Assembly: GCA_964234715.1 (NCBI GenBank)
Contig: OZ174291.1
DNA length: 64,000 nucleotides
Direction: 5' to 3' (one strand)
DNA from: Podarcis melisellensis
Lineage: Eukaryota
Positions 23,012 through 50,957 of the stretch are shown here, piece after piece. Each line of letters starts with the position of its first letter. Position 1 is the stretch's first letter. The translations under genes were made by a program, and so were the position numbers. The notes beneath the pieces were generated by a model that had not been told where the DNA came from, made no database searches, and saw only the letters and a list, made by a program, of their open reading frames with translations.

Positions 23012-23521
23012 TTATGCACAGATGTTACCACGACGCCCGAACTTCCTTCCAAGGAGTGCTCCTCTCCCATAGCCCAAACCATAGCCAAAGCCCCCAGAGC
23101 TTCCAAGGAGGCCAGACCCATAGCCCAAGCCCCCATAGCCATAGCCTCCTACGATCCCGGAACCACCAACTGCACATGGAGTGTTGCCTCCAACAGCCAC
23201 AGGCTCACAGCTGGCAGAGAGGATGGGCCCTGGGATGGTCACAACGCAGGCAGGTGGCTGGACCACGACCTCTGCTGGTGGGATTTGGTTGATGCAGGAT
23301 GGGATAACTCCTGCCAGGACTCCGAGGTTGGCTGCTCTTTCAGCACCTCCATATCCATAGCCGAGACCACCATATCCGTAGCCAAATCCTCCATTTCCAT
23401 AGCCGAGACCTCCCAATCCATAGCCGAGACCACCATAGCCAAGACCTCCTGCTGATCCAAACCCAACAGTGGGGGTGGAAGCACAGGATGGGACAGCACA
23501 GGATGGACCACAGTCAACCAT
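23012..23521 (-). CDS. Corneous beta-protein g4, 169 aa
   Basis: MVDCGPSC start at 23521 after acceptor at 23540-23541; CBP core; tail GRKFGRRGNICA; polyA signal 22785-22790. Confidence 0.95.
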   Translation of the reverse strand: MVDCGPSCAVPSCASTPTVGFGSAGGLGYGGLGYGLGGLGYGNGGFGYGYGGLGYGYGGAERAANLGVLAGVIPSCINQIPPAEVVVQPPACVVTIPGPILSASCEPVAVGGNTPCAVGGSGIVGGYGYGGLGYGSGLLGSSGGFGYGLGYGRGALLGRKFGRRGNICA

Positions 23522-23699
23522 TGTTGGATGGAGGTGAGTCTGAAACCAAAAACACCAAGGTAACACAGTAAGCCATGGCTGAAGATGAATCTAAAAAATA
23601 AGGTTGCAGAACTGAGCAGAACATGGAGCATGAAAACCAAAAAACAACAGAGAATTATAAATTGTCAGATATGATGTATATGAAGGAGGCCCAGTGTTG

Positions 23700-24230
23700 C
23701 ATGCTTCAACCAGATGTAGACAGAACGTCCTATTGTCAAGGGTCATGACAATTGCAGTTCAACAACAATTGGAAGCCCAGTACTTATTCTCTACTCTCCG
23801 ACACATGTTCCAACCAATTAGGGTTCACATATTATAGGTTTATTGTCCAAACTCCATCTGTGAGGTTTTGTCCTCTTCCCAAAAATTACTACCTTAATTT
23901 TAGAATGGTTGACTGTTCACTGCTGTTTTGTGCAAAAGACATTCAACTTCCTCAAAAGTCTCTGCATCCCAATTAAGGTAGCAGAAATCAAAACAATATC
24001 GTTGGCATACAGAAGAACTGAGAGTTTGACTTCCTGAATAGAAACAGGAAAATATTCCAGGCCTCCTAGTTCTTGAACAATATCATTTATATAAAAATTG
24101 AAAAGAAAGGGTGCTAGGCAGCATCCCTGTCAGACTCTCCTCTCAGTAGGGATATTATCAGAAAGCAACCCATTTGCCACAAGTCTAACCCTAAGCAAAG
24201 TATGGCTATGCAGCAGTTTATACAACTATG
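23700..24230 (-). mobile_element. Non-LTR reverse transcriptase remnant in g4 intron
   Basis: Manual translation RV*QGCCLAPFLFNFYINDIVQEL...LSVLLYANDIVLISAT (QG motif and degenerate YADD). Confidence 0.75.
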
Positions 24231-24427
24231 AAGTAGGTATGATGAACTGTAGTCCTTCAGTTGTCACTGGACTTTAGTCCCCTCAGTCAGCAAGCCCAAA
24301 GGTCAAGCGTGACCAAAGGTCAAGGACCAAATGGTCTCATTCTTGCTCTAGTGGGAATATCAATCTAGCCTTCCACTGTCATAAACTTCTGATAAATTAC
24401 GAAGTATTTCCCCAAGAAATCAGACTT

Positions 24428-24511
24428 ACCTACTTCTTTGAGAAGATGTAGTGAAGACAGAAGAGTCAGATGAAGCTGTTGGAGGAAAGGAGAGAACTCT
24501 GAGCTTTTATA
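24428..24511 (-). promoter_or_regulatory. g4 TATA, exon 1 and donor (type A)
   Basis: Minus-strand TATAAAA 24505-24511; donor gtaagt at 24428-24429; exon homologous to g3 exon 1. Confidence 0.85.
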
Positions 24512-25127
24512 TAGTTCTGCCAGCTGCCCCTTTGACTCAGAAACCGCCTATTTCCTGCAAACATTTGACTTAGCTGTCACCAACGCAATATGCAAAATTA
24601 CTTTGCTAAGCACAAAAGAGGGAGGTCACAAAATTAAGTGGTTGTAATAATGCAACACAAATAGTCTTGACACCATGTTTTTCCCTCACTCATTCTTTTA
24701 ATGTTGCTGGCCTCAAGTCAAATTGCTCTAATTTATCTGTTGCTTTTAACCAGAAACACCCAGAGGGAGAGGATGGAGATTAAGGTGCCTTCATCAGCTC
24801 TGGGGACTCTCAGTCATTATCAAAGCTTTTTGCATACATATATGGGATTTTAGGACACCACCGATATTAGAGGAAGGCAGAGTCTTAAAATGATGTACAA
24901 ACATGGGAGAAGCTTTGCTGCATCAGGGAAAAGACCCAACTAACTCTGTTCTTGTAATGGCCAGACAGAAACAGGACCTGCGAACAATAGCAGGAAAGCG
25001 CTATGGCCCCAGTCTTCTACTTGTGGAATAACCAAGAAGCATCTGATTGGCCACTGTGGAAAAGATGATGCCTTTGCTCTAAAAAAAGTTAAGCAAACCA
25101 ACTAGAACTATAAGCTCCATGCAAATA

Positions 25128-25368
25128 CATTGGTGCCTTGGTTCTTGAACGTAATCCATTCCGGAAATCCATTCGACTTCCAAAACGTTTGAAAACCAAG
25201 GCGCAGCTTCTGATTGGTGCAGGCACCCTGGAAACAATAGCCGACAAGCACACTGGATGTTCAGCTTCCAAAAAAAGTTCCTAAACCAAAGCATTTACTT
25301 CTGGGTTTGTGGCGTTCGGGTTCCAATTGGTTCATCAACTAAGCCATTTGAGAACCAAGGTTCCACTG
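25128..25368. mobile_element. Tc1/mariner (Tigger/pogo-like) MITE
   Basis: Imperfect TIRs cattggtgccttggttct / agaaccaaggttccactg, flanked by TA. Confidence 0.7.
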
Positions 25369-26120
25369 TATATAAAATAAATACAATACATTTTTAAAAT
25401 CTGACACCAAAGGAAGGCACTGTTGTTGACATCTGCTCATCTTGAGAGACAATGGAGTGTGCCTATAGGTGTTAAGTCAAGCCACTGTGTTAGCAGCACT
25501 GAAGTGATCTCCCTGGGGCAAAAGCCTGGGCAGTGGGCATGGAGGTTTTGGCCAGCAGACAAATGAAAGTAGACCAATACGTTTGGCACCAGCTTGGCTG
25601 CATGAGTTGCTGGAAGGCAGCTTACAAGGCCCCATCCAACTGTCTTGGGGACTGTACTCCAGATTTGTGTAGTGTTTACTTGTTAGCCACTTCTTCATCT
25701 GAAGATATCCTGCAAGCCAGCAGAGGTTTAGGATCAGAGTTTTCCTTCTCCTTGATGGGCTACCTTCCCAGGTTGACAAGCACCATCTGCCCCACACTTC
25801 CCTAAACAACTCATGCAGAAACCACCTTCTTGATTGTTGGGCCCACTATTGGTCTCGTTAGCTCAATCCAAGCAGGGAAAGTCCCTAGCTCACCAAGGGT
25901 TTGAGGCCTATTGGCTACCCTCACTTGGTTTAGGGGGACAGTTGAAGCTGCTCCCGGGGTGTGGCCAATGTCTCATGCTGCCAGCTTCTGGGAGCCATCG
26001 GTGAGATTTGAGTGCAGGGTGGGGACCAAAGGTGGGCAAAATATCTGAAAAGGAGCATGTTGTGTCCCCAGACAGAGGCACTATCCCTCCCTGAACACCC
26101 TGAACACCCCAAAAGAATGC

Positions 26121-26214
26121 TATTATTACTATTACTATTACTATTACTACTATTACTATTATTACTATTATTACTGTTATTATTACTGTTACTATTACTA
26201 TTACTATTACTATT
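26121..26214. repeat. (TAT/TAC)n microsatellite
   Basis: Visible tandem triplets; explains the poly-L and poly-I/V ORFs. Confidence 0.95.
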
Positions 26215-26267
26215 CCCCAGTCGCTCTGGGCAGCTCCTAGCATCCTAGCAGAATATTAAAAACATGA

Positions 26268-26305
<38 letters not shown>

Positions 26306-27170
26306 GGAAGTTTTTAATGTTATATATATATATACCATATATATTTATGGTTAACAAGCAATTAGCAATCCCCCTTTCAGAAACTATCAAAACACTTTCA
26401 TTTATTAGCAACAAATCACAAACACAGATAGCTGAAATGATTATGATGGTGGATGTCATTCTTAGATTGCACCCATCAAAATCCATCAAGGGTGATGTCT
26501 GGCTTGTTCATTGTTTTCAGTTGGTCTACTCTCAGTATGGATAAACAACAGATCACCAAAAAGCTGCCATCTCTTCTATCGGCCCCATGCAATCTTGCAT
26601 ATTGATGGGACAGAGGATAGGATTTCTGATGCTTGTATAAGAATGAATATGGAAACAGGTGGCTATTCCAGGGTTTTATTACATCTTAGTTAAGTTTTGC
26701 ATTTTGTTGGCAACTTTGACATTATGAGTTGCAGAGAGATTGGAAATTCATGCAATCCGGGATGGCTGATGTAACAAGTGAATTTAATATTTGATCCCTT
26801 ATTTACTGGCACCATTTTCTAGTACAGGGCTGCTAAATCTGAAGTTCTCCAGATGTTTTGCTGGATCACAACTCCCATCATCACTGGTTACATCAAACCT
26901 ATTTCCCCCCAAAACGTTTTCTCACTAACACTGTCAAATAATGTTGCTTTAGTGGGTACCTGTATATATGATAACCTTGTGTCAATGAATATTAGAGCTT
27001 TACTTATACAGTTATTTTTTGAAACTGTATTTGAAGGGATCTCTTTTATTACAGGCAGGCGATGCAACCTGATTAAAAGCTAGCTTTACTTAATTTGTTA
27101 AGAGATGGCCATAAAAATTAAATGTGGAAGGATCTAGCAGTCTTTTTGTCTGCAGCTAGAAATTCATAAA

Positions 27171-27490
27171 GGGACGCGGTTGGCACTGTGGGTTAAACCA
27201 CAGAGCCTAGGGCTTGCTGATCAGAAGGTCGGCGGTTCAAATCCCCGCAACGGGGTGAGCTCCCGTTGCTCAGTCCCTGCTCCTGCCAACCTAGCAGTTC
27301 GAAAGCACATCAAAGTGCAAGTAGATAAATAGGTACCACTCTGGCAGGAAGGTAAACAGTATTTCCGTGCGCTGTCCTGGTTCACCAGAAGCGGCTTAGT
27401 CATGCTGGCCACATGACCTGGAAACGCCGCAACCCCAGAGTCAGCCACGACTGGACCTAATGGTCAGGAGTCCCTTTACCTTTACCTTTT
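27171..27490 (+). mobile_element. Sauria SINE
   Basis: gggacgcggttggcactgtggg head and cctttacctttacc tail; flanked by tagaaattcataaa duplication. Confidence 0.9.
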
Positions 27491-28411
27491 AGAAATTCAT
27501 AAACATAAAATCGGAAAACAGCAACTAGTTTAGCTACAGAAGCATGATGACTTTGGAACATAGCTCTTGTGGAGACACCAGTGAAGCATTTTAGAGCACC
27601 AAGGAACACAAAGACCAAAGATCATTTTGAAACTCTATGGTATATGTTAATCAACACAGTGGAAAGAACAATGCTGTTTCCTCACCACCAGCCACTCATT
27701 GCTCACTCTGGAACCATCAGTTAAGGCAAAGTGGAAGATACAAGTGATAAAAACCAACTGTAAACATTGAGACTAACCTGCTTAATATTTAACAGCACTG
27801 TCTGCATTGCTAATATGTGGAATGTTTCTTGGAAGGTGGGGGTACAAGAGGATTGTTTGTTTTTTAAAAAAAAATCAGAAAAATAAATAAAAAGAAAAAC
27901 CGCATCTAGTCCAGCATCCTGTGCCCAACCAGATTCAATGAAAAGCCCACAAGAAGGATGTGATTTTGATAGCCCTCTTCCCAATGGTTCACACTGCAGT
28001 GAAGGTAGAGAACGATGGCAATGTGTTGTGGCTGGAAAGATCAACTGAAATCCTGGATGTGAAAGTCAAGTAGCCCACTCTGAACACCCACGGCTACTTT
28101 AGCTATTTTGAAGAGAGAGAAATGGGGACAACGTATCTGTTGATCTGTCTGACAGAAAAGGAACATACAATCATTTCTTTTAACTTTGTTTTGCAGAGGA
28201 ATTAAGAAGCCAAGATCAAAAGTTTCAGAGTGGGAGAGACGCGTTGTGGGAAGTTGAGGAAATGCTAACACTTTTGTCTCATTTTTCATTCTTATTAAAA
28301 TAATTAGGAGGCCTGAGGCATATCACAAATTATTTGCTAATTCAAGCTTCAGAGGAACAGGGGGTGTATCCAAGCCAATTTTGGGGCCATTAGGGGATCC
28401 AGTCAAAAGAG

Positions 28412-28500
28412 TATAAAAGGGTTCCCTGGGCTGAGATATCTCAACAGCTTCCCTGAACTTCATCTCCTTCTCTCCATTTCTACTCTTCTGAGACTTTGGT
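28412..28500 (+). promoter_or_regulatory. g5 TATA, exon 1 and donor (type B)
   Basis: TATAAAA 28412-28418; agactttg|gtaagtca donor at 28499. Confidence 0.85.
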
Positions 28501-28511
28501 AAGTCACTTGT

Positions 28512-28644
28512 TCACTCGGTAGAGCATGAGGCTCTTAACCTCAGGGTCAAGGATTCGAGCCCCACACTGGGCAAAACGATTCCTGGATTGGTTGAGCTAG
28601 ATTACCCTCTTGTTCCCTTTCAACCCTACCATTCTATGAGTCTA
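28512..28644 (+). mobile_element. tRNA-Lys(CTT)-derived SINE in g5 intron
   Basis: tcggtagagcatgaggctcttaacctcagggtc..gattcgagccccac head; CR1-type attctatga 3' end. Confidence 0.7.
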
Positions 28645-29585
28645 CGCTGGGATCTTGCACTTGCATGATTCTTGCACTGGTCAGAGGGTTCAACTAACTG
28701 AATTCCAACTCTTTTATTCTGTGAGATGGATAGCTCTCCCCAGGGGTGCCAAATTGAATAAAATATGGGGGGCAGGTAAGCACGCCTACACCATTTGAAT
28801 GGCAATGCTAATCAACTTGGGGGGAGGGCAGCCCACTCAAATATTTTATGGGCTCGCCAAAGAGACCTTCAACCAGGAATCTTAATCCTTCATGTTGTTG
28901 GTTGGCTTCTTTTCTGTATCTATCTTATGAAATCATGTATTTAGCTGCCTTATAATAAGTTAGTCTCTTGGTCTATCCAAAGTGTTATCGTCTGCAATGA
29001 CCAGCTGTGACTCTCCAAAGTTTCAAGGAGGGGGCATTTACCAGCTCGACCTGCAGATTCCTGGAACTGAACCTGGCACTTTCTGCATGCAAACCATGCA
29101 TCCTGCCACTGAGCAATGACCCTATGACCCCTCCCATAGAAACAAAGAAAGAGCCTAGACTTCAAGGCTCTGTCTAAAGCGCTGACTTAAATAGAAGCAT
29201 ATGAAGTTGACCTGTACCATGTCAGACCACTGGCACCTAGTTCAGGATTGTCTACACTGACTAGAAGATGCTCTACACTGGACTTCAGGCAAGGGACATT
29301 CCCTGACATTCCTGGGACCATGAGGGATAAGATTTAGGACGCACAATGGAGAGAAAGGTTGTAGTGGACAATACAGAATGCATGAATCAGTGCTTAATGT
29401 TTGTTGAATAACAGAAAACAGCTGATTTTCAATCAAGGAGAAAAGAAGATGGTTTAAGGTGGGGAAAATGGGAATGGGGGAAATATCCTACTACCTCTGA
29501 CAGATTCCCTGCACTCCCAAGTGATGCACCCCACACTTATTTTCTCCCTTGGTGTTTTTGCTTTCAGACTCACCTCCATCCAACA

Positions 29586-30077
29586 ATGGTTGACTGTGGT
29601 CCATCCTGTGCTGTCCCATCCTGTGCTTCCACCCCCACTGTTGGGTTTGGCTCAGCAGGAGGTCTTGGCTATGGTGGTCTCGGCTATGGATTGGGAGGTC
29701 TCGGCTATGGAAATGGAGGATTCGGCTACGGATATGGTGGTCTTGGCTATGGAAATGGAGGTGCTGAAAGAGCAGCCAACCTTGGAGTCCTGGCAGGAGT
29801 TATCCCATCCTGCATCAACCAAATCCCACCAGCAGAGGTCGTGGTCCAGCCACCTGCCTGCGTTGTGACCATCCCAGGGCCCATCCTCTCTGCCAGCTGT
29901 GAGCCTGTGGCTGTTGGAGGCAACACTCCATGTGCTGTTGGTGGTTCCGGGATCGTAGGAGGCTATGGGGGCTTGGGCTATGGGTCTGGTCTCCTTGGAA
30001 GCTCTGGGGGTTTCGGCTATGGTTTGGGCTACGGGAGGGGAAGGAAGTTCGGGCGTCGTTTTAGCATCTGTGCATAG
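29586..30077 (+). CDS. Corneous beta-protein g5, 163 aa
   Basis: Acceptor AG 29566-29567; CBP core; tail GRGRKFGRRFSICA; AATAAA 30302-30307. Confidence 0.95.
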   Translation: MVDCGPSCAVPSCASTPTVGFGSAGGLGYGGLGYGLGGLGYGNGGFGYGYGGLGYGNGGAERAANLGVLAGVIPSCINQIPPAEVVVQPPACVVTIPGPILSASCEPVAVGGNTPCAVGGSGIVGGYGGLGYGSGLLGSSGGFGYGLGYGRGRKFGRRFSICA

Positions 30078-30493
30078 GCCAATTAAACCTAAGAAACATA
30101 TTATGAACTGATAATCAGAGAGCTTGATACAGATCCATTGGGTGTGGTTCAAAAGAGCTAAATCCCAGGATCCACTGCTGAAGTTGAACCCTCTTCTTCC
30201 CCCACCTCTTTGCTTTGAAGTCCAGAAAACTAAGATGCTTATATGCTAAATTTCTTCTGTATTTCTCATACAGCTATCAATGTCATTTCTTGAATCTTTT
30301 CAATAAAGCTTTTGGCGCATTACAGTAACCCATGTGTGTTGGTTTTTGTAACACCTGACCTCAGTTACACACAGCAAGCCATCCAGCTGACTGAAGTAAT
30401 TTTTGTCTAAATTAAAACGGGAATGTGTCTCAAGGCATGTTTGCCAACAAAAATTTGTCAGATGTTTGGAGGTTTTATACTTCAACTTTAAGA

Positions 30494-30634
30494 GATTCTG
30501 GGCTGGTAGGAAGCTATGGCTATGGGTCAGGTCTCCTTGGAAGACATTTTGGTGGCTACCTTGGAGGTCTGAGGAGGGGTGGGCTCCTTGGAAGGAAATC
30601 CCTGCTGGGATGTTGTGGTCATACATACTTTTAG
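30494..30634 (+). pseudogene. Orphan CBP C-terminal tail (displaced original 3' end of g5)
   Basis: DSGLVGSYGYGSGLLGRHFGGYLGGLRRGGLLGRKSLLGCCGHTYF*, collinear with the g7 tail. g7-like 3'UTR follows, with ATTAAA at 30932-30937. Confidence 0.88.
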
Positions 30635-31720
30635 ATATATTGAAGTCTTGAAGAACATATTTGTGATGATGACAGGAATGACCCTGAATGGGTGAAGATG
30701 ATGCAGTGTCTTGTCCTGGGACCATCCTAGAAGCCAACATCTTTTGCATGATTGATTGATTGATTGATTGATCTTTTGCATGAATTTCAGCCATGTTTCC
30801 TTCCTCCTTCTTTCCCCCTTGAAAGTATTTAATCCATGAATGAGTTCAGAGCTACATTGTACTAAATCCGCCTTTGCTTTGTTCATTTCTGCTATCTGTA
30901 CACTTGTCTACTTGACACTATCCATATTTGCATTAAAAAGCATTCTGTCATCGACTCGCTCCCTCTCCCTCTCTTGTTTGATTTGGCATCTTATGGTGAA
31001 AATTCCCCCAAAAAGAATACCAGGGTAGTCTCCCATGTTTGAAAAATCCTGGAATATGTTGGTCTAGAAGACCCTGAGCTAACTGAGAACTTAAGGGGCA
31101 CTTAATAGGTTCAGAAGGCAGTGCACGAGTGGGGAAACATTGGCCTTCCCGATATTGCTGACCACCACACCTGGCATTAGGTATATTTTGTTTCAGACCT
31201 CATAATTGCTATTTCTTTTTTAAAAAAACTTTTTAAATTCAAAATTAAAACAAAACATATTATCCAGAAACATATCATCCTTATTTTCCCCCCATTTTTC
31301 CTCCCTCCCCCCACCCTCCCGTACAAAACCTACCCACCCCCACCCCCCGGCTTCCCTCAGTTCCAGTCTTTGATTTCTCTGAGAATGCTGTTTTCTGCAT
31401 GTTACAAAGTTGTATAGATCCTCAAACTATTTAGCTGATTATTATAAATGGCAGCTGATTTTGCCATTTCAGCGTATTCTATCAGTTTCATAAGCCATTC
31501 CTCCTTAGTTGGTAATCCTTTCCAATCCACTTCTGACTTCCAACTCTACAACGATATGATTCTATGAATATGCACACCACTCCTCTCCTCATTTGAGTTT
31601 CCCAGACACTGGTATTCAGAGAGATATTAGCTGCAACAGTGTAAGGGGAATATAGTCATCATGACTAATGACCACTGATTGCCTCCCCACCCAACCAATG
31701 AATTTGCCTAATCCTCTCTT

Positions 31721-32069
31721 GTTGTTATTGTTTAGTCGTGTCTGACTCTTCGTGACCCCATGGACCAGAGCACGCCAGGCCCTCCTGTCTTCCACTGCCT
31801 CCCGCAGTTTGGTCAAACTTATGTTGGTAGCTTCGAGAACACTGTCCAATCCACTCCTTCTCTGTCGTCCCCTTCTCCTTGTGCCCTCCATCTTTCCCAA
31901 CATCAGGGTCTTTTCCAGGGGGTCTTCTATTCTCATGAGGTGGCCAAAGTCTTGGAGCCTCAGCTTCAGGATCTGTCCTTCCAGTGAGCACTCAGGACTG
32001 ATTTCCTTAAGAATGGATAGGTTTGATCTTCTTGCAGTCCACGGGACTCTCAAGAGTCTCCTCCAGCAC
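31721..32069 (-). mobile_element. BovB LINE 3' fragment with TSD
   Basis: BovB ORF end; TSD aatcctctctt at 31710-31720 and 32070-32080. Confidence 0.92.
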
Positions 32070-32379
32070 AATCCTCTCTTAGCAACATCCAAGTTGATGG
32101 CCATCTCTTTAATTGTTGTAGGAGGGAATACCATTATTCAAATATATTCTGTGTGAAGTCCCTCCCCGCTGGGTCCTAAATAGTTCAACAGTCAGTTCTA
32201 GTCTTATGAGAGAAGGAGACAAGCAAGGTGGCTTTCATGTCATGAACCACAAACAAACCAAACTATTATATGGGAGAAGCCCAAAGGATAAATGTTTATG
32301 GGATTGATGTTTTGTTCAGATATGTGTGTGCAACATGATTCAGCTAAGGTCATTAAAACATATTACTGAAAGAAAATCA

Positions 32380-34390: not shown

Positions 34391-34494
34391 CTGGTGAGGA
34401 GAGGGTGGCGAATGGGGGTGGTGACTAGATTGTCAAAGTAGGACCTGGGAGACCAAGAGTTGAATACCCACTTGGCCATGAAGCTCACACACCT

Positions 34495-34641: not shown

Positions 34642-34672
<31 letters not shown>

Positions 34673-35834: not shown

Positions 35835-36338
35835 CTATGAACAGATGCTAAAACGACGCCCGAACCTCTTTCCAAGGAGTGCTCCCCTCCCGTAACCCAA
35901 ACCATAGCCGAAGCCCCCAGAGCTTCCAAGGAGACCAGACCCAAAGCCCAAGCCCCCATAGCCTCCTACGATCCCGGAACCACCAACGGCACATGGAGTG
36001 TTGCCTCCAACAGCCACAGGCTCACAGCTGGCAGAGAGGATGGGCCCTGGGATGGTCAGAACGGAGGCAGGTGGCTGGATCATGACCTCTGCTGGTGGGA
36101 TCTGGTTGATGCAGGATGGGGCAACTCCTGCCAGGACTCCGAGGTTGGCTGCTCTTTCAGCACCTCCATAGCCATAGCCGAGACCACCAAAACCGTAGCC
36201 GAATCCTCCATTTCCATAGCCGAGACCTCCCAATCCATAGCCAAGACCACCATAGCCAAGACCTCCTGCTGAGCCAAACCCAACGGTGGGGGTGGAAGCA
36301 CAGGATGGGACAGCACAGGATGGACCACAGTCAACCAT
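35835..36338 (-). CDS. Corneous beta-protein g6, 167 aa
   Basis: CBP N-terminus and core; tail GKRFGRRFSICS; acceptor 36357-36358; polyA signal 35653-35658. Confidence 0.95.
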   Translation of the reverse strand: MVDCGPSCAVPSCASTPTVGFGSAGGLGYGGLGYGLGGLGYGNGGFGYGFGGLGYGYGGAERAANLGVLAGVAPSCINQIPPAEVMIQPPASVLTIPGPILSASCEPVAVGGNTPCAVGGSGIVGGYGGLGFGSGLLGSSGGFGYGLGYGRGALLGKRFGRRFSICS

Positions 36339-36831
36339 TGTTGGGTGGAGGTGAGTCTGAAAGCAAAAACACCAAGGGACAGAATAAGTGTAGGGTACAT
36401 CACTTCAGTGGGGGTGGACCACAGTCAACCATGGCTGAAGAAGAATCTAAAGTATATAATTGAAGAACTGAGTTGAATATGGAGCATGGAAACCAAAGAG
36501 GACCAAATAATTATAAAAGCTGAGATATAAGGTACATCAGGGGGAGTCAGTGTGTAGTTTTTTCTGATGTTGCAGACTTCAACTCCCATCAGACCCAAGC
36601 AGCATGAACAACAGAGAAGGGTGATGAGACTATAGGAACCTCACTATAACTACTGAGTGAGAACTACACCCCTGTGGTAGAAAAATAAGAAAATACTCAT
36701 AGATATTGGAAGGATGATTCAGTGATGATGCTCTGAATTTTAAATAGCATGCTATGTCTACAATACAATCAAAAACATTTTTTTTTTGACATGCTGGAGC
36801 TCAATAAACCATTTTCTAGCATGGTAGGAAT

Positions 36832-36892
<61 letters not shown>

Positions 36893-37525: not shown

Positions 37526-37609
37526 ACCTGCTTCTTTGAGAAGATGAAGTAAAGATGGAAGAGTCAGATGGAGCTGTTGGAGGAACTGAAGGAAGTCTGA
37601 GCTTTTATA
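37526..37609 (-). promoter_or_regulatory. g6 TATA, exon 1 and donor (type A)
   Basis: Minus-strand TATAAAA 37603-37609; aagcag|gtaagt donor at 37526-37527. Confidence 0.85.
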
Positions 37610-38467: not shown

Positions 38468-38469
<2 letters not shown>

Positions 38470-38516
<47 letters not shown>

Positions 38517-40083: not shown

Positions 40084-40443
40084 GTAAAGGTAAAGGTACC
40101 CCTGCCCGTACGGGCCAGTCTTGACAGACTCTGGGGTTGTGCGCCCATCTCACTTAAGAGGCCAGGGGCCAGCGCTGTCCGGAGACACTTCCGGGTCACG
40201 TGGCCAGTGTGACATCGCTGCTCTGGCGAGCCAGAGCCGCACACGGAAACGCCGTTTACCTTCCCGCTAGTAAGCGGTCCCTATTTATCTACTTGCACCC
40301 GAGGGTGCTTTCAAACTGCTAGGTTGGCAGGCGCTAGGACCGAGCTGCGGGAGCGCACCCCACCGCAGGGATTCGAACTGCCGACCTTTCGATCGGCAAG
40401 TCCTAGGCGCTGAGGCTTTAACCCACAGCGCCACCTGCGTCCC
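40084..40443 (-). mobile_element. Sauria SINE (second subfamily)
   Basis: Full length; TSD agaaaacaag. Confidence 0.9.
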
Positions 40444-40544
40444 AGAAAACAAGAGTTTTGTTCAAAATAAAGATTTTAACCTCTGGGGAAAACTCTGGAA
40501 AAGTGATCTGAAGTTCACAGCATGTTATTCTTTGAAGGAGAACA

Positions 40545-41210
40545 ACCTGAAAATGATTTACTCTGAGTAGGCAAAGATGTATAAGACTGAATCAGATAAG
40601 TGCTGGAGATGCAAAGAGGCTGAGGGAACATTCTTTCATATGTGGTGGACTTGTAAAAGGGTAAAAGAGTATTGGGAAATGATCCATAATGAATTGAAAA
40701 ACATATTTAAAAGTACTTTAAAGTACTTTAAAGAGTCCTTTCTGTTGGGGATAATTCAGACTGAAATTCCCAGGTGTCAAAAATGTTATTTATATGCCAC
40801 TACTGTGGCCCGTGTTTTGTTAGCCCCAAAATGGAAAACTAACAAGGTCCTAACCAAAGAAGAATGGCAACTTAAGTTGGCAGAATATGTGCAGCTTGCA
40901 GACTTAACATATAGAATAAGAGAACAAGAAAAGCATATGTTTAGAGAAGATTGGGAAAAGTTTATTGAATATATGGGAAATAACAGTGGACAGGTGAAAA
41001 TGCTGGCAGCATTAAGATAAATTCAACAGTGTAAATAAGTTATGATGGATGTAATAATGGAATACTGAATGGTATAGTTTCTATAAAATATGCAGGGATT
41101 TATGATATGTAAAATGAATCATGGAAAGAGAAGAATGGAAGTCATTGATAGCTTAAGGATGTAAAAACTGAGTACTTTAAATTGTAAAGCAGAAAATTTA
41201 ATAAACATTA
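40545..41210 (+). mobile_element. L1-clade LINE 3' fragment
   Basis: CWRCKEAEGTFFHMWWTC zinc knuckle; ORF 40577-41020. Confidence 0.85.
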
Positions 41211-41213
41211 GGT

Positions 41214-41545
41214 TAAGGTAAAGGGACCCCTGACCGCTAAGTCCAGTCGTGGATGACTCTGGGGTTGTGTGCTCATCTCACTCTAGAGGCCGAGGGAGCC
41301 GGTGTTCGTCTGTAGACAGCTTCCGGGTCATGTGGCCAGCATGACTAAGCCGCTTCTGGTGAACCAGAGCAGTGCACAGAAACGCCATTTACCTTCCCAC
41401 CGGAGTGGTACCTATTTATCTACTTGCACTTTGACACGCTTTTGAACTGCTAGGTGGGCACAAGCAGAGACCGAGCAACGGGAGCTCACCCCGTCGCAGG
41501 GATTCAAACCGCCGACCTTCTGATCGGCTAACTAAGCTCTAGGCA
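41214..41545 (-). mobile_element. Sauria SINE
   Basis: Collinear with the other copies. Confidence 0.88.
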
Positions 41546-41955
41546 AAGAAAACAAGAGATTTGTTCTGTGTATGGACTGATCAACTGAAATCCTATGTCA
41601 GACAGTATCACAAGCTGCTGAGAAGATAGCCAGCTACTTCAGCTACTTTAGAGAGATTGAATAGGAACAGGGTATCTGCTGATCTGTCTGAAAGCAAGAA
41701 ACATGCAAGCAATTTTATGTTTCATTAAATCTGTTTAGCAGAAGAATGAAAATGCAAAGATCAAAAGTGTCAGAAAGGGCAAGGCGCATTGTGGGGAGCT
41801 GAAGAAATGCTAACGATTTTGTGTCATTTTTCTTTCTTATTAAAGTAATTAGGGGGCATGAGACATTTCAGAAACAGTTTGCTAATTAAAGCCTCGGGGT
41901 GAAGGGGGTGTATCCCAGCTAGCTGTAGGGCCATCAAAGGACACAGCCAAAATAG

Positions 41956-42044
41956 TATAAAAGGGCTCCTTGGGCTGAGATATCCCAACAGCTTCGCTTG
42001 ACTTTATCTCCTTGTCTCCATTTCTACTCTTCGGAAACTTTGGT
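41956..42044 (+). promoter_or_regulatory. g7 TATA, exon 1 and donor (type B)
   Basis: TATAAAA 41956-41962; aactttg|gtaagtca donor at 42043. Confidence 0.85.
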
Positions 42045-42145
42045 AAGTCAAGTCTACCTTTATATGTTAGAATGTTACCTTTAAATGATTCTTGCACTTT
42101 CAAGAGGTTCAGATTTCTGAACTCCAAGAGAACACCAAAATTCTA

Positions 42146-42339
42146 AACAAAAAAAATTCCTTCCAGTAGCACCTTAAAGACCAACTAAGTTAGTTCTTGG
42201 TATGAGCTTTCGTGTGCATGCACACTTCTTCAGATACGAAAGCTCATACCAAGAACTAACTTAGTTGGTCTTTAAGGTGCTACTGGAAGGAATTTTTTTT
42301 GTTTTGACTATGGCAGACCAACACGGCTACCTATCTGTA
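42146..42339. mobile_element. Penelope-like element remnant (inverted terminal repeat) in g7 intron
   Basis: Perfect 69-bp inverted arms 42145-42213 and 42236-42304; TSD accaaaattcta at 42134-42145 and 42340-42351; hammerhead-like core. Confidence 0.75.
42200..42237 (-). ncRNA. Minimal type-I hammerhead ribozyme motif (PLE-associated)
   Basis: Minus strand reads GUAU-CUGAAGA-A-GUGUG(CAUG)CACAC-GAAA-GC-UC^AUAC: core boxes, stem II, palindromic AGCU in place of stem III, and a 4-bp stem I. Confidence 0.6.
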
Positions 42340-42399
42340 ACCAAAATTCTATTAATCTTTGAGATGTGTAGAAATTGTGTGTTTGTATGTGTGTATACA

Positions 42400-42712
42400 G
42401 GGACACGGGTGGCACTGTGGTCGGCGGTTCGAATCCCCGTGACGGGGTGAGCTCCTGTTGCTCGGTCCCAGCTCCTGCTCACCTAGTAGTTCGAAAGCAC
42501 GTCAAAGTGCAAGTAGATAAATAGGTACCGCTCTGGCGGGAAGGCAAACAGTGTTTCCGTGCGCTGCTCTGGTTCGCCAGAAGCGGCTTGGTCGTGCTGG
42601 CCACATGACCTGGAAGCTGTACGCTGGCTCCCTCAGCCAATAAAGCAAGATGAGCGCCACAACCCCAGAGTCGGCCACTACTGGACCTAATGGTCAGGGG
42701 TCCCTTTACCTT
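42400..42712 (+). mobile_element. Sauria SINE (internally deleted) in g7 intron
   Basis: gggacacgggtggcactgtgg head, ccctttacctttt tail; flanked by tatgtgtgtataca duplication. Confidence 0.88.
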
Positions 42713-44245
42713 TTATGTGTGTATACACAGTCTTCTGAAAATTGGAAGTTGCCTTCTCCTAGCTTGCAGTGTTAGCCTGTTGAGCTCAGTATTACCTACA
42801 ATGACCACCAGTAAAGATCCAGGATTTCTGATCAGATTCCATGCCCAGCTGCACCCAGCCCATGACATTCTGCATGCAGAGCAGATGTTCTCCCAGTTAA
42901 CTACAGCCTCTCCCCCTGCCCGCCACCCATCTTATAGTATTTGAAACATGCTTTCAGAAGTAGGTATCTCTGTTTTCTTGGGAAGCTGGGATTCTGGGTC
43001 CCATTCTACCACACATTGTGGAAATCCAGCATTCATCATTACCGTGAGCAAAACTAGCCTCATATGCTTAAGTCTTTTTAATTCATGAAGGGGTTAAGAC
43101 CATAGAGTAAGCTGTCTTTCCAGGGTTAGCTCACCTTGAGAGGGGTTAGATAATCAAGGTTTTGTTCTTTCCCAGTCTAAGTGAAGATGCTAGGCTGGTT
43201 GATCCAGCTTCGCCGCATGGCTCTCACAAGCCACTCTTGAGTTCCCATAAAAAATAATTAGGAACTTTCATCATGCTGCAATTAAGCCCAGTACTGCCTG
43301 TGCAACTTGTCTGACTGATGTGTGGAAAAGCACATGAAACTGACCTTTGAAGGGTTTGTAAGTAAACCAATTTTAAAATTGCCAACCTTGTGCTCTTTTC
43401 CTATGCTCAGGAAGGAGGGAAGTTTTGAAACTTGCAAGGGCATGTTTCAAAGGTATAACAGTTTTTATGTCCATGCTCTATTTCCAGAAATTCTCTTTTA
43501 TACCTTTTTTTTTTTCATTGAACAAAAAAAAAATCTAGCACTCATCACTCTCTATGGTTGGATACCTTTCATATTTCACCAATCATGTAACCTTCACGAG
43601 AACTGACACCAGAGGGCAGCACAAACTAATATTAATGTGCTTTTTGTGGAACAAAATTTCATGGAAGACCTGTGTTTAAAAAGCAGGGTATTGGTCCATC
43701 TAACTCAGTATTGTGTACAGTTTATCTTGTGTATTTTATGAAGTCAAGTATTTAGCTGCCTAGTACTGAGTCAGACTCTTGGTCCATATAGCTTGCTATT
43801 GTCTACAACGACCAGCTGTGACTCTCCAGACCAGGTTTCAAAGAGGGAACATTTCTTAGCTCAACCTGGAGATTCCTGGGACTAAACATGAGACTTTCTG
43901 CATGCAAAACATATGTCCTTCCCCCAGAAAGTGATGGTCCTTCCCCTAGAAATAAAGAGCTCAGACCTCATGGCTCTGATCTTCCTGGAACCATGAGGGA
44001 AGAGAAGAGCTGTAGTGGCGACGTAGAGGACAATACAGAATACATGAATTAGGGCTTCATATTTGACGAATAACAGAAGACAGCTGATTTTCATTCAAGG
44101 AAGATGGTTTAAATTGGGTGAAATGGGATTAAGGGAAATATCCTAATACATCAGGCAGAAACCCTTCACTCCCCACTGAAGTGATGTACCCCGCACTTAT
44201 TTTCTCCCTTGGTGCTTTTGGTTTCAGACTCACCTCCACCCAACA

Positions 44246-44755
44246 ATGGTTGACTGTGGTCCATCCTGCGCTGTCCCATCCTGTGCTTCCACCCCCACTG
44301 TTGGGTTTGGTTCAGCAGGAGGTCTTGGCTATGGTGGTCTCGGCTATGGATTGGGAGGTCTCGGCTATGGAAATGGAGGATTCGGCTACGGATATGGCGG
44401 TCTCGGCTATGGCTATGGAGGTGCTGAAAGAGCAGCCAATCTCGGAGTCCTGGCAGGAGTTGCCCCATCCTGCATCAACCAGATCCCACCAGCAGAGGTC
44501 GTGGTCCAGCCACCTGCCTCCGTTCTGACCATCCCAGGGCCCATCCTCTCTGCCAGCTGTGAGCCTGTGGCTGTTGGAGGCAACACTCCATGTGCCGTTG
44601 GTGGTTCCGGGATCGTAGGAGGCTATGGCTATGGGTCTGGTCTCCTTGGAAGCAATTTTGGTGGCTTCCTTGGAGGTTCCCATTTTGGTCTGAGGAGGGG
44701 TGGGCTCTTTGGAAGGAAATCCCTGCTGGCACGTCGTGGTAGTGTGTGCTATTAA
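44246..44755 (+). CDS. Corneous beta-protein g7, 169 aa (type B with its own tail)
   Basis: CBP core; distinct tail GSNFGGFLGGSHFGLRRGGLFGRKSLLARRGSVCY; acceptor AG 44226-44227; ATTAAA 45055-45060. Confidence 0.95.
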   Translation: MVDCGPSCAVPSCASTPTVGFGSAGGLGYGGLGYGLGGLGYGNGGFGYGYGGLGYGYGGAERAANLGVLAGVAPSCINQIPPAEVVVQPPASVLTIPGPILSASCEPVAVGGNTPCAVGGSGIVGGYGYGSGLLGSNFGGFLGGSHFGLRRGGLFGRKSLLARRGSVCY

Positions 44756-45512
44756 GCCTACTGAACTTGTTAAGAAAAAATCTGTCTGATGATTATAGCC
44801 ATGACCCTGAATGGGTGAAGATGATGCAAATCTATTATTATTTAGTGTCTTGTCCTGAATTCTGAGCTTCTGGGACCATCCTAGAAGCCAATATCTTTTG
44901 CATGAATTCTAGCCATGTTTCATTTCTCCTTCTTTCCCCCTTGAAAGTATTTGATCCATGAATGAGTTCAGGGCCCCATTGTGCTCTGTGTTCCTTTGCC
45001 TTCCTCATCTCCTTCTTCTTGCACAATTGTCAACTTGATACTTTCCACCTTTTTATTAAAGCTCATTCTTTATTCTAATATGGCTCTCTCTTCATTTGGC
45101 ACCTTTTGGCAACAATTCCTCAGAGGAGGAAATCTTCCTCTTAATCTATAATAACATGGTCATTGATCAACATTACGAACACATTGTCCAGGAGTATTTA
45201 AAAAATGGGGGGGGGACACGAATAAAATAAAATAAATACAAGCAGCATGAAACAAAGTAAATACAAGCAGCTCAGAATTAAGTAAAATGCGCATCAACAT
45301 TTGAAACATCTAAATCATAGCACAAACTCCAAAGAGGAAAATTTCAGAACGTTAAATGTCAGTTCTTGGTGAATTTTGCTTGCTGCAGCACAATACATTT
45401 CTATGCTGAGAGTGATAGATGGGCTTTGATTTGAAATAAGTAGAATGGTAGTCTCTCACACCGGCACATTCTTGGAGTATGCTGGCCCAGAGAGACCCTG
45501 AATTATTCAATA

Positions 45513-45708
45513 AATGCAGAACCTTTCATTTATCCCTGTTGAAACTCATTTTGCTAGTTTGAGCCCAGCTCTCCAATCTGTTACAGTCATTTTGAATCCT
45601 GATTGTGTCTTCAGTGGTGTTACGTACCCCTCCCTGTTTGGTGCCATCTGCACATCTGATGAGCATCCACTCAGTTCCTTCATCCAAGTCATTTATAAAG
45701 ACGCTGAA
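45513..45708 (-). mobile_element. CR1 LINE reverse transcriptase fragment
   Basis: LFSVFINDLDEG...ADGTK..GV.NT.ED.IRIQND..RLESWA...KMSFNRDK. Confidence 0.85.
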
Positions 45709-46180
45709 CAACAACAACAACAACAACCTTCTTGACACATATAATCCAAAAATGGTTGTCACACATTATAGAAAAGATGGGGGTTAGAATTCTCCTTGGT
45801 TTCACAATCTGACACATCAGATTTTCAGCCAGGGCAATTGTCCAAGCTCTAGAATACCATGCTTTAATGTCCAAGCCCAAGGTAGTGCGCCATCACATGA
45901 CTATTTCCATGTGTGCCACTATGAGGAGAAACATAAAAAGTACTTTATGAGCAATTGTTGGAGAAGACATGCCCTTTATTTCAAGCAAAGCAAGTTGATG
46001 GGTAGGTTCATTTTGTATATTAAACTCAGTTCTTTAAATTCCAGAATCCAAAATGGATAAGCAGATTTGAAAAACCCCTACATATGTACAGTATTAAGAT
46101 CCAGTACTAAGATTGATGTCACCGCTGGTATCATGTGGGAAATACAGAAAAGGGTAAGAGACCAGCTATGTAAGAGTTTC

Positions 46181-46429
46181 AAGAAGAAGAAGAGTTTGGA
46201 TTTAATATCCCACTTTATCACTACCCGAAGGAGTCTCAAAGCAGCTAACATTCTCCTTTCCCTTCCTCCCCCACAACAAACACTCTGTGAGGTGAGTGGG
46301 GCTGAGAGACTTCAGAGAAGTGTGACCAGCCCAAGGTCACGCAGCAGCTGCATGTGGAGAAGCAGAGACGCGAACCCTGTTCACCAGATTATGAGTCTAC
46401 TGCTCTTAACCACTACACCACACTGGCTC
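46181..46429 (-). mobile_element. Squam3-like tRNA-derived SINE
   Basis: Head GAGCCAGTGTGGTGTAGTGGTTAAGAG; (TTC)n tail. An older related copy lies at about 58510-58727. Confidence 0.75.
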
Positions 46430-47197
46430 CATTACTTGGAGGATTCCATATACAGGGATTGGTTTTGCTCTCTGCAGTTTTCTTGAAATTGTCAGGAGGT
46501 GAAAATCATGTCCACTGTCCTCCTAGAAGGTCTAAAACCATTTTGGATTTCAGGAAGGGTAACCTCGGATATTGTTAGGAGATGGTTTGCTAAGATTCTT
46601 CAAGAATTTTGCCGGTCACAGATAATAAAAAGATGCCTTGATAGTTTCTGCAATTTGCTTTATCACCTTTTCTTAAAGAGATTGATAATTTTGGCATCCC
46701 TAAAGTCTGCTGGGATCTCTTCTCTCTCTCCCAGACTCTCCCCCCCCCCAATGAGCTTGTGATACCACACCCTTTGTTGTAGCAGGAGCATTCACCATAA
46801 GTTGTTCTAAAGCAGTCAACTCTCAGTCTGCTTAAATGGCTGTGCATGGTTTTAACAGAAAGAAAAACAACTGATTAAAATCAAACCATGGCCATGCTAC
46901 ACTAGGAGTTTTAGTCAAGAACTGTTCTTTACGTTGGGGAGGAACCAGTTACATAAAAAAAAAAAAACCTGAGTCTACATAGACCTGATTGTTCCCAGCC
47001 AGTGGCATAGATTGGAGTGGGGGAGTACAGCGGTGCTTCCCCGGGCACAAAATTGCTAGGGGTGCAAAATTTCAACACCTGGTGCTGCCTCAATACAGCT
47101 GTGCAATTCCATTGCTGGGCCCAGTTGAAAATGGCTTCTCTATGTGAAGCAGGAAGTGACTTCTCCAGAAAGTGACCTCTCCAATCAACAGAATGAC

Positions 47198-47200
<3 letters not shown>

Positions 47201-47241
<41 letters not shown>

Positions 47242-47580
47242 TCTGTTGGCTCCCAACGCAATATTAAAAACACGGTACAACATCAAACATTGAAAGCTTC
47301 TCAAAACATGACTGCCTTCAGATGTCTTCTTAAAGTCAGATAGTTGTTTATTTCTTTGACATCTGATGGGAGGGCAGGTGCCACTACCAAGAAGGCCCTC
47401 TTCCTGGTTCCCTGTAACCTCACTTCTCGCAGTAAGGGAACCGCCAGAAGGCCCTTGGTGCTGGACCTCAGTGTCCGGGCTGAATGATGGGGGTGGAGAC
47501 ACTCCTTCAGGTATTCTGGGCTGAGGCCTTTTAGGGCTTTAAAGGTCAGCACCAACACTTTGAATTATACTCAGAAACGT
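47201..47580 (-). mobile_element. L2 3' fragment with (AAT)n tail
   Basis: LVLTFKALKGLSPEYLKE...EVRLQGTRKRAFLVVAP. Confidence 0.8.
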
Positions 47581-48660
47581 GCTCTTATCTCTGTGGTTGC
47601 AATTTCCTGGGTGACGCGGACGCTGTTAGGTGGCTGAATGTGCACACATATTCGGTCCATTTAATCCCACTCTGTATGGCCCCAGGCTCTGGCAACCCAT
47701 GCTTTGCCACTGTTCCCACCCTTCCCAGTTCCTTGATCTTCTTAATACACAAAAGTTCTGCACACGGGATGTTTCATTAATTGTCACCTACACTTTTGGG
47801 AAACTACCATTTGTTGTAGTGCTTCACAACTCCCTAGGCATTCACAACCGACATAAAACCCCTTTCCCCAAAATACATTTACTCCATCAGTCAAAGGAAC
47901 TGCTTCAGATAATTTCCAATCTGCTGTCTATATTTACTTCCTTCATTTCAGCAAAGTCTGGTGAGGAGAGAGATGCTATTCTTGAATCCATCTCTTTCTG
48001 TATCTGCTTCATCACAAACTGAATTAGCTCCCTGCATATTAGACACGGACTCCGCCTCAACAGAAAACAGTCTCCAGGTTTGCTTACAGCAGCTTTTGCC
48101 TTTTGACTCCTAGTGACAGGGTAAACCTTCTCTCCGGCTCCCAGTATATTCTGCCTAAGAATTTTGGCACATCTTTCCCTCTCCAGTAAATCTTTGCCTC
48201 AGATACTGGGAGCTAATCTGGATGCCGTCGGTGACCTTTGCTGTTTCGTGAGGAAACATATTTGTGGAAGTATTTAGATCTTCTCTTAATAAACTTGTAC
48301 CTTGTAAACTTGTAAACTTGATTCTTGTACCTGTGTCTAGAGATGCCCAGTGTGTGTTGTTATTCATTAAAACTTTCTCCATTAACTCAGTGTCAAAGTT
48401 TGAAGCTTTCTCAAACCTCATTTTACAGAGTTTGACCTTTTGGGAGGGCTTGGACTGGTTTGGACTCAGTCTGACCCTTATGTTTCTCTCCCCTTATGGT
48501 TTTGATCTATGGGCTACTTTTAAAATGAGGCTGCATTTTAAATTGATTTTTAACCTGTATTTTAAATCTGGTTTTTTTTCTATTATGTTTTTATTGTAAT
48601 TTTACTGGTGTTAGCCGCCCTGAGCCCAGCTCTGAACGGGGAGGGCAGGGTGTAAATAAA

Positions 48661-48661
<1 letters not shown>

Positions 48662-48691
<30 letters not shown>

Positions 48692-48734
48692 CTTCTTCTT
48701 CTTCTTCTTCTTCTTCTTCTTCTTCTTCTTCTTC
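48662..48734. repeat. (TTC)n microsatellite at the tail of an L2-type 3' end (about 48450-48660)
   Basis: Directly visible. Confidence 0.9.
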
Positions 48735-49868
48735 AGGCGAGATGTCTACAGCTTTTGCCATTTTAACTGGGGAGCTGGGATACTAGGTGCTACTGACCTG
48801 ACTTCGCACCTTTCTCTGTGCAGTTTGCTTGCCTCTCTCCTCCTCTTCAAGACTAATTGGTCTGCTAACACAATCACCTTGTGGACATTCTGAGGATTTC
48901 TGTCTCTCAAAATTCGAGAAAATGTATAGAGAGACTTTTTTCTCCCTTTCTCATCTTGCTAGAAGCAGGGGTCATGCAGGGAACCAGAATCTTGCAGAAT
49001 TCAGTGGAAGTAAAAGGATATAGTTCTTCACAAAATGCATAAACTTCTAGATTCAGTACCAGAAGGTGTGGCGATTGCCACCAGCTTGGATGGCTTTAAA
49101 TGCAGATTACAAATAAAAAAATAAAGTCAAGGTTTAAATGTGCTTAATATATTTCTTTAACTCGTGTATGCAATAATTTAAAACTGCTATCAAAATACAG
49201 TATCTGACTGAAAGGCTGGATAATCCTGCAGCATTTGACTACATTATCTCCTATCAAAAATATGTTATTGTCTAAAGTCTTGTAACATATTGATTACAAA
49301 AGCTGTAGTCCACAATAAATTCCACACTGTGTACATATGCAAATGTTGCAAAACTACAAAAGATTATCCAGCTATTATGACTGTTGCTTCTCTGAATAAA
49401 TAATGGTTTGAGGCACTCTAAGAGGGGACTTGTTTTGAAAAAGGGGGAAAGGATAATTCTCTCAAGGCGAGAGAACTATAACCACATAGAACTATACCAT
49501 TCAGGGGGCCAGAGAGAAAGATGTCCTGCAAATGTTCCAATTTTAGTTTGGCCAAAAACTGCTTCAGACAGCTGAGGCCCTGGACACCTTGCTATGTGGA
49601 ACTGAGGCTTTACATTTAAAAACCAAGACAAACAGGTTATCAGAATGCAGAACAAGCTTTATTGAAAAGGTCAAAGTAAGAGCATTGAAAGGGGCAAAGA
49701 AGAAAATCGGTGTAGAAGGATCTTTTTTCTTCTGCACTCTGAAGCAAAGAACGGAGGATGAATTCCAGGAGTGATTGCTTGAATTCAGCTTTTCTGAACC
49801 ATGGCCGATAGATCTGTATCAAGCTCTCTGATTATCAGTTCAGGATATGCTTCTCAGGTTTAATTGGT

Positions 49869-50360
49869 CTATGAACAGATGCTAAAACGACGCCCGAACT
49901 TCCTTCCCCTCCCGTAGCCCAAACCATAGCCGAAACCTCCAGAGCTTCCAAGGAAACCAGACCCAAGGCCCAAGCCCCCATAGCCTCCTACAATCCCGGA
50001 ACCACCAACTGCACATGGAGTGTTGCCTCCAACAGCCACAGGCTCACAGCTGGCAGAGAGGATGGGCCCTGGGATGGTCACAATGCAGGCAGGTGGCTGG
50101 ACCACGACCTCTGCTGGTGGGATCTGGTTGATGGGTTTAGGGATAATCCCATCTAGGATGCCAAGGTTGGCTGCTCTTTCAGCACCTCCATTTCCATAGC
50201 CGAGACCACCAAATCCATAGCCGAATCCTCCATTTCCATAGCCGAGACCTCCCAATCCGTAGCCGAGACCACCATAGCCAAGACCTCCTGCTGAGCCAAA
50301 CCCAACGGTGGGGGTGGAAGCACAGGATGGGACAGCACAGGATGGACCACAGTCAACCAT
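49869..50360 (-). CDS. Corneous beta-protein g8, 163 aa
   Basis: CBP with variant core entry GILDGIIPKPINQIPP; acceptor 50379-50380; polyA signal 49658-49663. Confidence 0.95.
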   Translation of the reverse strand: MVDCGPSCAVPSCASTPTVGFGSAGGLGYGGLGYGLGGLGYGNGGFGYGFGGLGYGNGGAERAANLGILDGIIPKPINQIPPAEVVVQPPACIVTIPGPILSASCEPVAVGGNTPCAVGGSGIVGGYGGLGLGSGFLGSSGGFGYGLGYGRGRKFGRRFSICS

Positions 50361-50957
50361 TGTTGGATGGAGGTGAGTCTGAAACCAAAAACACCAAGGG
50401 ACAAAATAAGTGTGGGGTACATCACCTCAGTGTGGGTGGACCACAGCTAACCATGGCTGAAGAAGAATCTAAAGTATATAATTGAAGAACTGAGTTGAAT
50501 ACAGTATGGAGCATGAGAACCAAAGAGGGCCAAATAATTATAAAAGCTCAGATATAAGGTACTTCAGGGAGAGTCAGCGTGTAGTTTTTTCTGATGTTGC
50601 AGAATTCAATTCGCATCAGACCCAACCATCATGAACAATAGAGAAGGGTGATGAGACTATAGGAACTAGAGCCCTGTGGTAGACGCTGTAGAAAAAGAAG
50701 AAAATACTCACATACCTTTTTAGGTCTCCATGTTTCCATGATCGTGCTCTGAATAAAGAAGCTTGTTATGTCAACAATTCTATCAATCATTTTTTGACAG
50801 GCTGGACCACTATAAACTATTATCGCCCCAGGTGGGGATGAGTATGAAAAAATAAAGCTGCAATCTGTTATCTATTTACCTGGGGTTAAGCATTAGTGAA
50901 TACAATTGGGTTTACTTATTAGTAAAACGCAGAGTTTTGTGCTATAAAAGGCAGAAA

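Follow-up and report, generated by a model that had tools for sequence, protein, structure and literature searches.

Doubled splice acceptors and start codons in three corneous beta-protein genes of Podarcis melisellensis, probably left by paralogous tracts that ran past the start codon

Three genes in a stretch of lizard DNA each carry two splice acceptors, two 5' untranslated regions (5'UTRs) and two start codons, which raises the question of whether the upstream set is a working part of the gene or a remnant of how the gene arose. The stretch, referred to here as the window, comprises 64,000 nucleotides (nt) of contig OZ174291.1 from the Podarcis melisellensis assembly GCA_964234715.1. It contains nine corneous beta-protein (CBP, "beta-keratin") genes, g1 to g9, on alternating strands, and the three genes in question are g4, g6 and g8. 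An initial annotation had described them as products of a swap of gene heads, and had suggested that the choice of acceptor could act as a translational switch. We consider it probable that g4, g6 and g8 are chimeric CBP genes and that the upstream acceptor and ATG are vestigial, left by tracts of a second gene type (type B) that overshot the start codon of a first (type A).

Upstream of the working acceptor, 5'UTR and ATG, the three genes contain the following relic heads, those of g6 and g8 with an upstream open reading frame (uORF).
23564..23592, minus strand: relic head of g4, with AG 23592-23591, 14-nt 5'UTR, ATG 23576 and 13 nt of old coding sequence
36400..36448, minus strand: relic head of g6, with AG 36448-36447, 5'UTR, ATG 36432 and uORF 36432-36400
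50422..50470, minus strand: relic head of g8, with AG 50470-50469, 5'UTR, ATG 50454 and uORF 50454-50422

The spacing between relic and main ATG is 55 nt in g4 and 94 nt in both g6 and g8, which places two acceptors 51-90 nt apart within one 5'UTR intron. The uORFs of g6 and g8 run for 10 codons to a TGA, with the stop 61 nt before the main ATG, and the relic ATG of g4 opens a 20-codon out-of-frame ORF whose stop overlaps the main ATG. The context of the relic ATG is strong, with G at -3 and +4. Inspection of the three sites confirmed the coordinates, uORFs and ATG spacings of the initial annotation. Its proposal that the upstream segment is homologous to the acceptor and start of g3 was likewise upheld, both by alignment to g3 and by a search for the 23-nt type-A block (acceptor, 14-nt 5'UTR and ATGG) with at most one mismatch, which gave four matches in the window.
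18792-18814, plus strand: type-A block in g3
23573-23595, minus strand: type-A block in g4, identical to the g3 head over 23 nt
36429-36451, minus strand: type-A block in g6
50451-50473, minus strand: type-A block in g8

Shuffled sequence gives an expectation of 0.01 block matches and no shuffle reached four; the block was not found at the heads of g5, g7 and g9. Beyond the relic acceptor, homology to g3 continues for another 70-80 nt or so into the intron. In g3 itself, candidate AGs lie 15 nt and 3 nt ahead of the ATG. As the double head recurs in independent assemblies of Podarcis muralis, Podarcis raffonei and Lacerta agilis, it is not an assembly artefact.

The origin of these heads becomes clearer when the promoters are considered. 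Two promoter and exon-1 classes exist in the cluster. In g3, g4, g6 and g8, alignment and motif searches place a type-A TATA box and then a short exon ending in a CAG/GTAAG donor at about 0.9-1.4 kb upstream in g4, g6 and g8 and at 2.1 kb in g3, with no further occurrence of this motif in the window. By alignment, g2, g5, g7 and g9 have a second, distinct TATA box, exon 1 and donor (type B).
16584..19320, plus strand: g3, the intact type-A reference, with TATA 16584-16590, exon 1 end 16665, acceptor and start 18792-18814, coding sequence (CDS) 18811-19320
24430..24511, minus strand: g4 type-A TATA 24511-24505 and non-coding exon 1 to 24430, with donor GT 24429-24428
37528..37609, minus strand: g6 type-A TATA 37609-37603 and exon 1 to 37528, aligned with g3, g4 and g8
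51712..51793, minus strand: g8 type-A TATA 51793-51787 and exon 1 to 51712, aligned with g3, g4 and g6
54713..56145, plus strand: g9, the type-B reference, with TATA 54713-54719, exon 1 end 54799, acceptor before 55636, CDS 55654-56145

The TATA and exon-1 region of g6 is identical to that of its L. agilis ortholog at 57 of 58 nt. The layout common to g4, g6 and g8 is therefore recognizably composite: the promoter, exon 1, intron, acceptor, 5'UTR and first codons are all type A, and the intron tail, acceptor, 5'UTR and CDS that come after them are type B. As the upstream head is type A and everything from -39 or about -75 of the main ATG onward is type B, like g5, g7 and g9, the three genes are identified here as chimeras. 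A third head form is seen in g1 (5091-5110), where the acceptor and 5'UTR are type-B-like but 10 nt shorter, and where a possible exon-1 donor lies at 3659-3675.

The junctions between the two types are sharp. Homology of g4 to g5, g6 and g7 stops at -39 from the main ATG, that between g6 and g7 stops sharply at -75, and that between g8 and g9 stops at -69 in an ungapped alignment or -72 by BLAST. In g6 the change from type-A coding sequence to type-B intron falls near 36414.
23012..23563, minus strand: g4 type-B part, with 3 nt of unclear origin, polypyrimidine tract, AG 23541-23540, 18-nt 5'UTR and CDS 23521-23012
35835..36414, minus strand: g6 type-B part, with about 57 nt of intron tail including a branch-point candidate, AG 36358-36357, 18-nt 5'UTR and CDS 36338-35835
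49869..50436, minus strand: g8 type-B part, with intron tail, AG 50380-50379, 5'UTR and CDS 50360-49869, at the inner end of the g8/g9 inverted repeat

The arms of that repeat (49133-50432 and 56884-55582) are 97% identical, and their inner edge is the g8/g9 homology boundary. The coding parts of g4 to g9 are 93-97% identical while their promoters reach merely 73-81%, the pattern expected from concerted evolution by conversion. As in a gene-conversion chimera, the tract is closer to a paralog than its flanks are and ends at a sharp boundary. Candidate donors for g4 are g5, g6 and g7, which fit about equally well.

It was also observed that each chimera forms an inverted repeat with its head-to-head type-B partner (22594-23560 with 30497-29547, 35956-36416 with 44628-44167, and the g8/g9 arms given above), and that the inner edge of each repeat coincides with the type-A/type-B junction.

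Comparison with other lacertids places these junctions in time. A locus of L. agilis, syntenic with 20.7-39.3 kb of the window at 87-90% non-coding identity, contains the g4, g5 and g6 orthologs. In the g6 ortholog the double head recurs with its junction and 94-nt spacing, together with a 10-codon uORF, and the event shared by g6 and g8 therefore precedes the split of Podarcis and Lacerta. The L. agilis g4 ortholog has a single type-A head, and the diagnostic bases of its CDS are type A as far as about +70 and type B beyond. Since the 55-nt form of g4 is also present in P. muralis and P. raffonei, and thus in three Podarcis species, the g4 event is later and independent, and falls on the Podarcis branch. 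The orthologs accordingly confirm two separate events, a 94-nt event common to g6 and g8 and a 55-nt event in g4, as had been proposed from the spacings. The state before the event is thus preserved for g4 by L. agilis, and for g6 and g8 no pre-event ortholog was found among the genomes compared. The locus obtained from Zootoca vivipara covers the orthologs of g1 to g3, with the g4 head lying outside it.

Taken together, it seems likely that g4, g6 and g8 each began as a g3-like type-A gene arranged head-to-head with a type-B partner, and that their coding part was overwritten from a type-B gene. We infer that the copying took place by ectopic gene conversion or by a replication template switch, probably between inverted partners. 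The usual tract would end inside the homologous CDS without a scar, as seems to have happened in the L. agilis g4 ortholog. Twice, however, the tract would have continued beyond the start codon into type-B intron, for which type-A genes offer no counterpart, and an illegitimate join would have sealed it there; in Podarcis g4, conversion would have run 39 nt past the ATG and left a duplicate head. The old acceptor, 5'UTR, ATG and 4-7 codons would then immediately precede a branch point, polypyrimidine tract, AG, 5'UTR and CDS that had been imported. Transcription would start from the type-A promoter and exon 1 would be spliced to the imported downstream acceptor, with the relic remaining intronic. 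The lasting effect would be that type-A promoters express type-B proteins.

The splice signals fit such an import. All type-B acceptors have a T-rich tract and a YTNAY branch-point candidate 28 nt upstream of the AG (CTGAT in the L. agilis g6 ortholog). As both elements lie inside the 75 nt imported into g6 and g8, that import appears to have brought a complete 3' splice-site unit. The 39 nt imported into g4 lost the type-B YTNAY, and codons 2-3 of the relic provide a YTNAY 29 nt upstream of the new AG; judged from its position, this piece of the old start-codon region may serve as the branch point of the imported acceptor.

The best of the competing explanations, although an unlikely one, is that both acceptors are used, the upstream choice putting the uORF (g6, g8) or the overlapping ORF (g4) first and so tuning CBP translation. 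Alternative 3' splice sites in 5'UTRs can include or skip a uORF. Were the upstream acceptor used, re-initiation after the 10-codon uORF of g6 and g8 would be partial, and most translation of the main ORF of g4 would be prevented by the ORF that overlaps it out of frame. Such mRNAs would escape the usual exon-junction-dependent decay, since the uORF stops in the last exon. The g4 relic agrees with such use to the extent that its acceptor equals the working acceptor of g3 over 23 nt and that its polypyrimidine tract, the younger one, is still intact with a long T run. The older tract in g6, g8 and L. agilis speaks against it, being interrupted by purines in comparison with the working type-A acceptors of four species.

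Transcripts provide a more direct view. Four runs, presumed to be RNA, were available as assembled contigs, and what follows covers the contigs listed. On g8 exon 2 they terminate precisely at the downstream acceptor (50379), and two contigs ending there account for all the depth of run X8 in the bin 50348-50546. No coverage was found for the stretch 50380-50470 between the acceptors, and no use of the upstream acceptor was seen, including in run X5, where CBP depth is 10^5 or more. Three overhangs at 50379 match the end of type-B exon 1 and probably represent g9, g5 or g7 mRNA placed on the near-identical g8. One overhang corresponds to the g6 form of the type-A exon 1 end and, with three shared bases, connects 13 nt of exon 1A with the downstream acceptor. 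The type-B donor and acceptor are confirmed by a spliced g9 contig, whose joint (54798 to 55635) has GT..AG ends.

Two further features of the contigs concern neighbouring genes. In run X1, one contig that is spliced to exon 2 nevertheless reaches 188 nt upstream of the g9 exon-1 donor (54611-54798), past the TATA box; transcription may begin further upstream, or the assembly may have merged DNA with RNA. In run X5, overhangs at 55649 (55636-55653) carry a g2-type 5'UTR variant, which shows that this sample is rich in g2-like mRNA as well. A Logan contig (L003) considered as a transcript was rejected, as it contains an intron end and is thus genomic DNA of another species.

Constraint on the relic would also be expected to distinguish a functional element from a vestige. 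The relic AG, ATG and uORF frame are intact in g4, g6, g8, L. agilis and two other Podarcis species, in line with use of both acceptors, although at 5-13% divergence between the species such retention carries little weight. The distal intron of g6 is 89% identical to that of L. agilis. The relic uORF is identical at 29 of 33 positions both between g6 and L. agilis and between g6 and g8, compared with 38/43 and 40/43, respectively, for the type-B intron tail. The relic polypyrimidine tract, AG and 5'UTR reach 35/36 and 36/36, slightly more than the intron around them, again as the two-acceptor explanation would have it. The changes in the uORF between g6 and L. agilis or g8 alter the peptide, which is not conserved, and retain start and stop; the uORF seems to diverge at the neutral rate of the intron. 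Across the three Podarcis species, about 5% of the g4 relic differs, which equals the background rate. Overall there is no clear sign of selection on the relic, with low power at 5-13% divergence. Two independent origins could reflect selection. Nevertheless, the contigs, which end at the downstream acceptor, and the uORF, which diverges like neutral intron, do not support a translational switch through acceptor choice. On balance, homology, promoters and orthologs bear out the structural part of the initial annotation, and its regulatory part is not supported.

Several points nonetheless weigh against regarding the relics as vestiges of overshooting tracts. The relic AG, the g4 polypyrimidine tract, the Kozak-strong ATG and the uORF frame are kept in every copy and species examined, and the slight excess of identity over background in the relic tract, AG and 5'UTR could be a hint of constraint. 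The RNA evidence is thin: the exon-1A junction comes from one contig with a 10-letter overhang, contig assembly drops rare isoforms, such that minor or tissue-specific use of the upstream acceptor could be missed, and g8 itself may be silent in X5, as its own exon 1 has zero contig depth in that high-expression run. Microhomology at the junctions amounts to a few ambiguous nt, the g4 junction contains 3 unexplained nt, and the donor gene and molecular mechanism proposed here are inferences.

A stage- or tissue-specific variant of acceptor choice can also be envisaged and is, in our estimate, slightly less probable again than general use of both sites. The upstream acceptor would be used in, for example, claw, embryonic or regenerating epidermis, giving stable, poorly translated uORF mRNAs; splice choice would then set CBP dosage, and the two origins would be a result of selection.

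A single event, in which g4 once had the 94-nt form and then lost 39 nt by a microhomology deletion, is very improbable. It would account for the fact that g4 can be aligned to g6 and g8 with one 39-nt gap and for gene pairs that resemble duplicated units. It was rejected on the L. agilis g4 ortholog, whose lone type-A head and type-A-like sequence to about +70 coexist with a g6 ortholog already in the 94-nt form; moreover, the g4 relic is g3-like in its GCT second codon, 5'UTR and T-rich tract, unlike the relic of g6 and g8. That each gene duplicated its own head locally in tandem and the copies then diverged, without input from another gene, can practically be dismissed, since, despite the direct repeat of start codon and first codons that it would explain, the downstream copy comes with 39-75 nt of intron 90-97% identical to type-B gene introns and matches the upstream 5'UTR at just 10 or so of 14 positions.

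Chimeras formed by overshooting type-B tracts therefore remain the preferred explanation, and it is useful to compare them with known systems. Ectopic (interlocus) gene conversion and chimeric genes are familiar from tandem families such as globins, opsins and palindrome arms. The CBP genes resemble those families in their patchwork identity, sharp tract boundaries, coding regions evolving in concert while flanks diverge, and near-identical inverted partners. They differ in that the tract ends in a non-homologous intron, leaves an insertion-like duplicate of the 3' splice site and ATG instead of a clean replacement, and does so twice with different breakpoints. The two acceptors also recall alternative 3' splice sites of 5'UTRs in their close spacing and in the strong-context upstream ATG that the upstream choice would add, but here the contigs show the downstream site only and the uORF is without sign of constraint.

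Squamate CBP genes belonging to the epidermal differentiation complex (EDC), described for P. muralis, have a TATA promoter, a short non-coding exon 1, one 5'UTR intron and a single coding exon, and gene conversion has been suggested for tandem CBP paralogs of that species (PMC11431283). The genes of the window share with them the PF02422 core, the gene structure and the tandem paralogs, and depart from that description in having two promoter and exon-1 classes, chimeras between them and vestigial intronic acceptors and ATGs. Double acceptors or chimeric heads are not mentioned in PMC11431283 or PMC11704414.

Membership of this family is readily established. The Pfam PF02422 core beta-sheet box is found in g3, g4, g6 and g8 at 33-39 bits, with a gathering cut-off of 25. 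The best protein relatives of the window's CBPs are lacertid CBPs, and the g3 protein is 98% identical to one P. muralis protein. Exact-protein look-ups of g4, g6 and g8 gave no match, and that of the L. agilis g6 ortholog returned its own genome only. At the DNA level the window is 93-96% identical to P. muralis and P. raffonei. The single-coding-exon EDC structure, with TATA promoter, non-coding exon 1, one 5'UTR intron and the whole CDS in exon 2, follows from the TATA and GT donor conserved in both head classes, the g9 spliced joint and the contig junction of exon 1A to exon 2. The nine genes and the one run of N are placed as follows.
5099, plus strand: main ATG of g1
11862, minus strand: main ATG of g2
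18811, plus strand: main ATG of g3
23521, minus strand: main ATG of g4
29586, plus strand: main ATG of g5
36338, minus strand: main ATG of g6
44246, plus strand: main ATG of g7
50360, minus strand: main ATG of g8
55654, plus strand: main ATG of g9
57228-57362: N run

Reptile scales and claws are built from the products of CBP genes, a family shaped by duplication and conversion. The locus may offer a dated record, at the level of single bases, of how conversion tracts overshot the start codon, and for one of the two events both pre- and post-event orthologs are available. Moving the protein of one type to the promoter of the other would be a simple route to regulatory diversification within a gene cluster. 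If the upstream acceptor is used after all, these genes would form a natural system for uORF control by splice choice, although the present evidence points otherwise. For annotation, a relic ATG and acceptor can mislead gene models.

An over-extended reading frame is also seen at g3, where an ORF at 18640-19320 runs from the intron end through the acceptor into the CDS. The same N-terminal over-extension seems to be present in a 238-aa database protein of Podarcis lilfordi belonging to the g3 cluster, where it would be an annotation artefact.

Some minor observations concern the orthologous loci. In the L. agilis locus (L001), at 3008-3052, 10001-10045 and 17175-17219, all three paralogs orthologous to g4, g5 and g6 have TGG at codon 13 where Podarcis has TGT, changing a conserved Cys to Trp (PSWAS for PSCAS); a derived change that paralogs have in common clearly marks concerted evolution. 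At the g5 position, the L. agilis protein (L001:10001-10510) is 93% identical to g7 and just 81% to g5 (window 29586-30077). In the Z. vivipara locus (L006:1-456), the g3 ortholog faces, tail-to-tail, a gene that runs off the locus and whose 3' end is g1-like, which implies that local gene order or gene tails differ from those of Podarcis.

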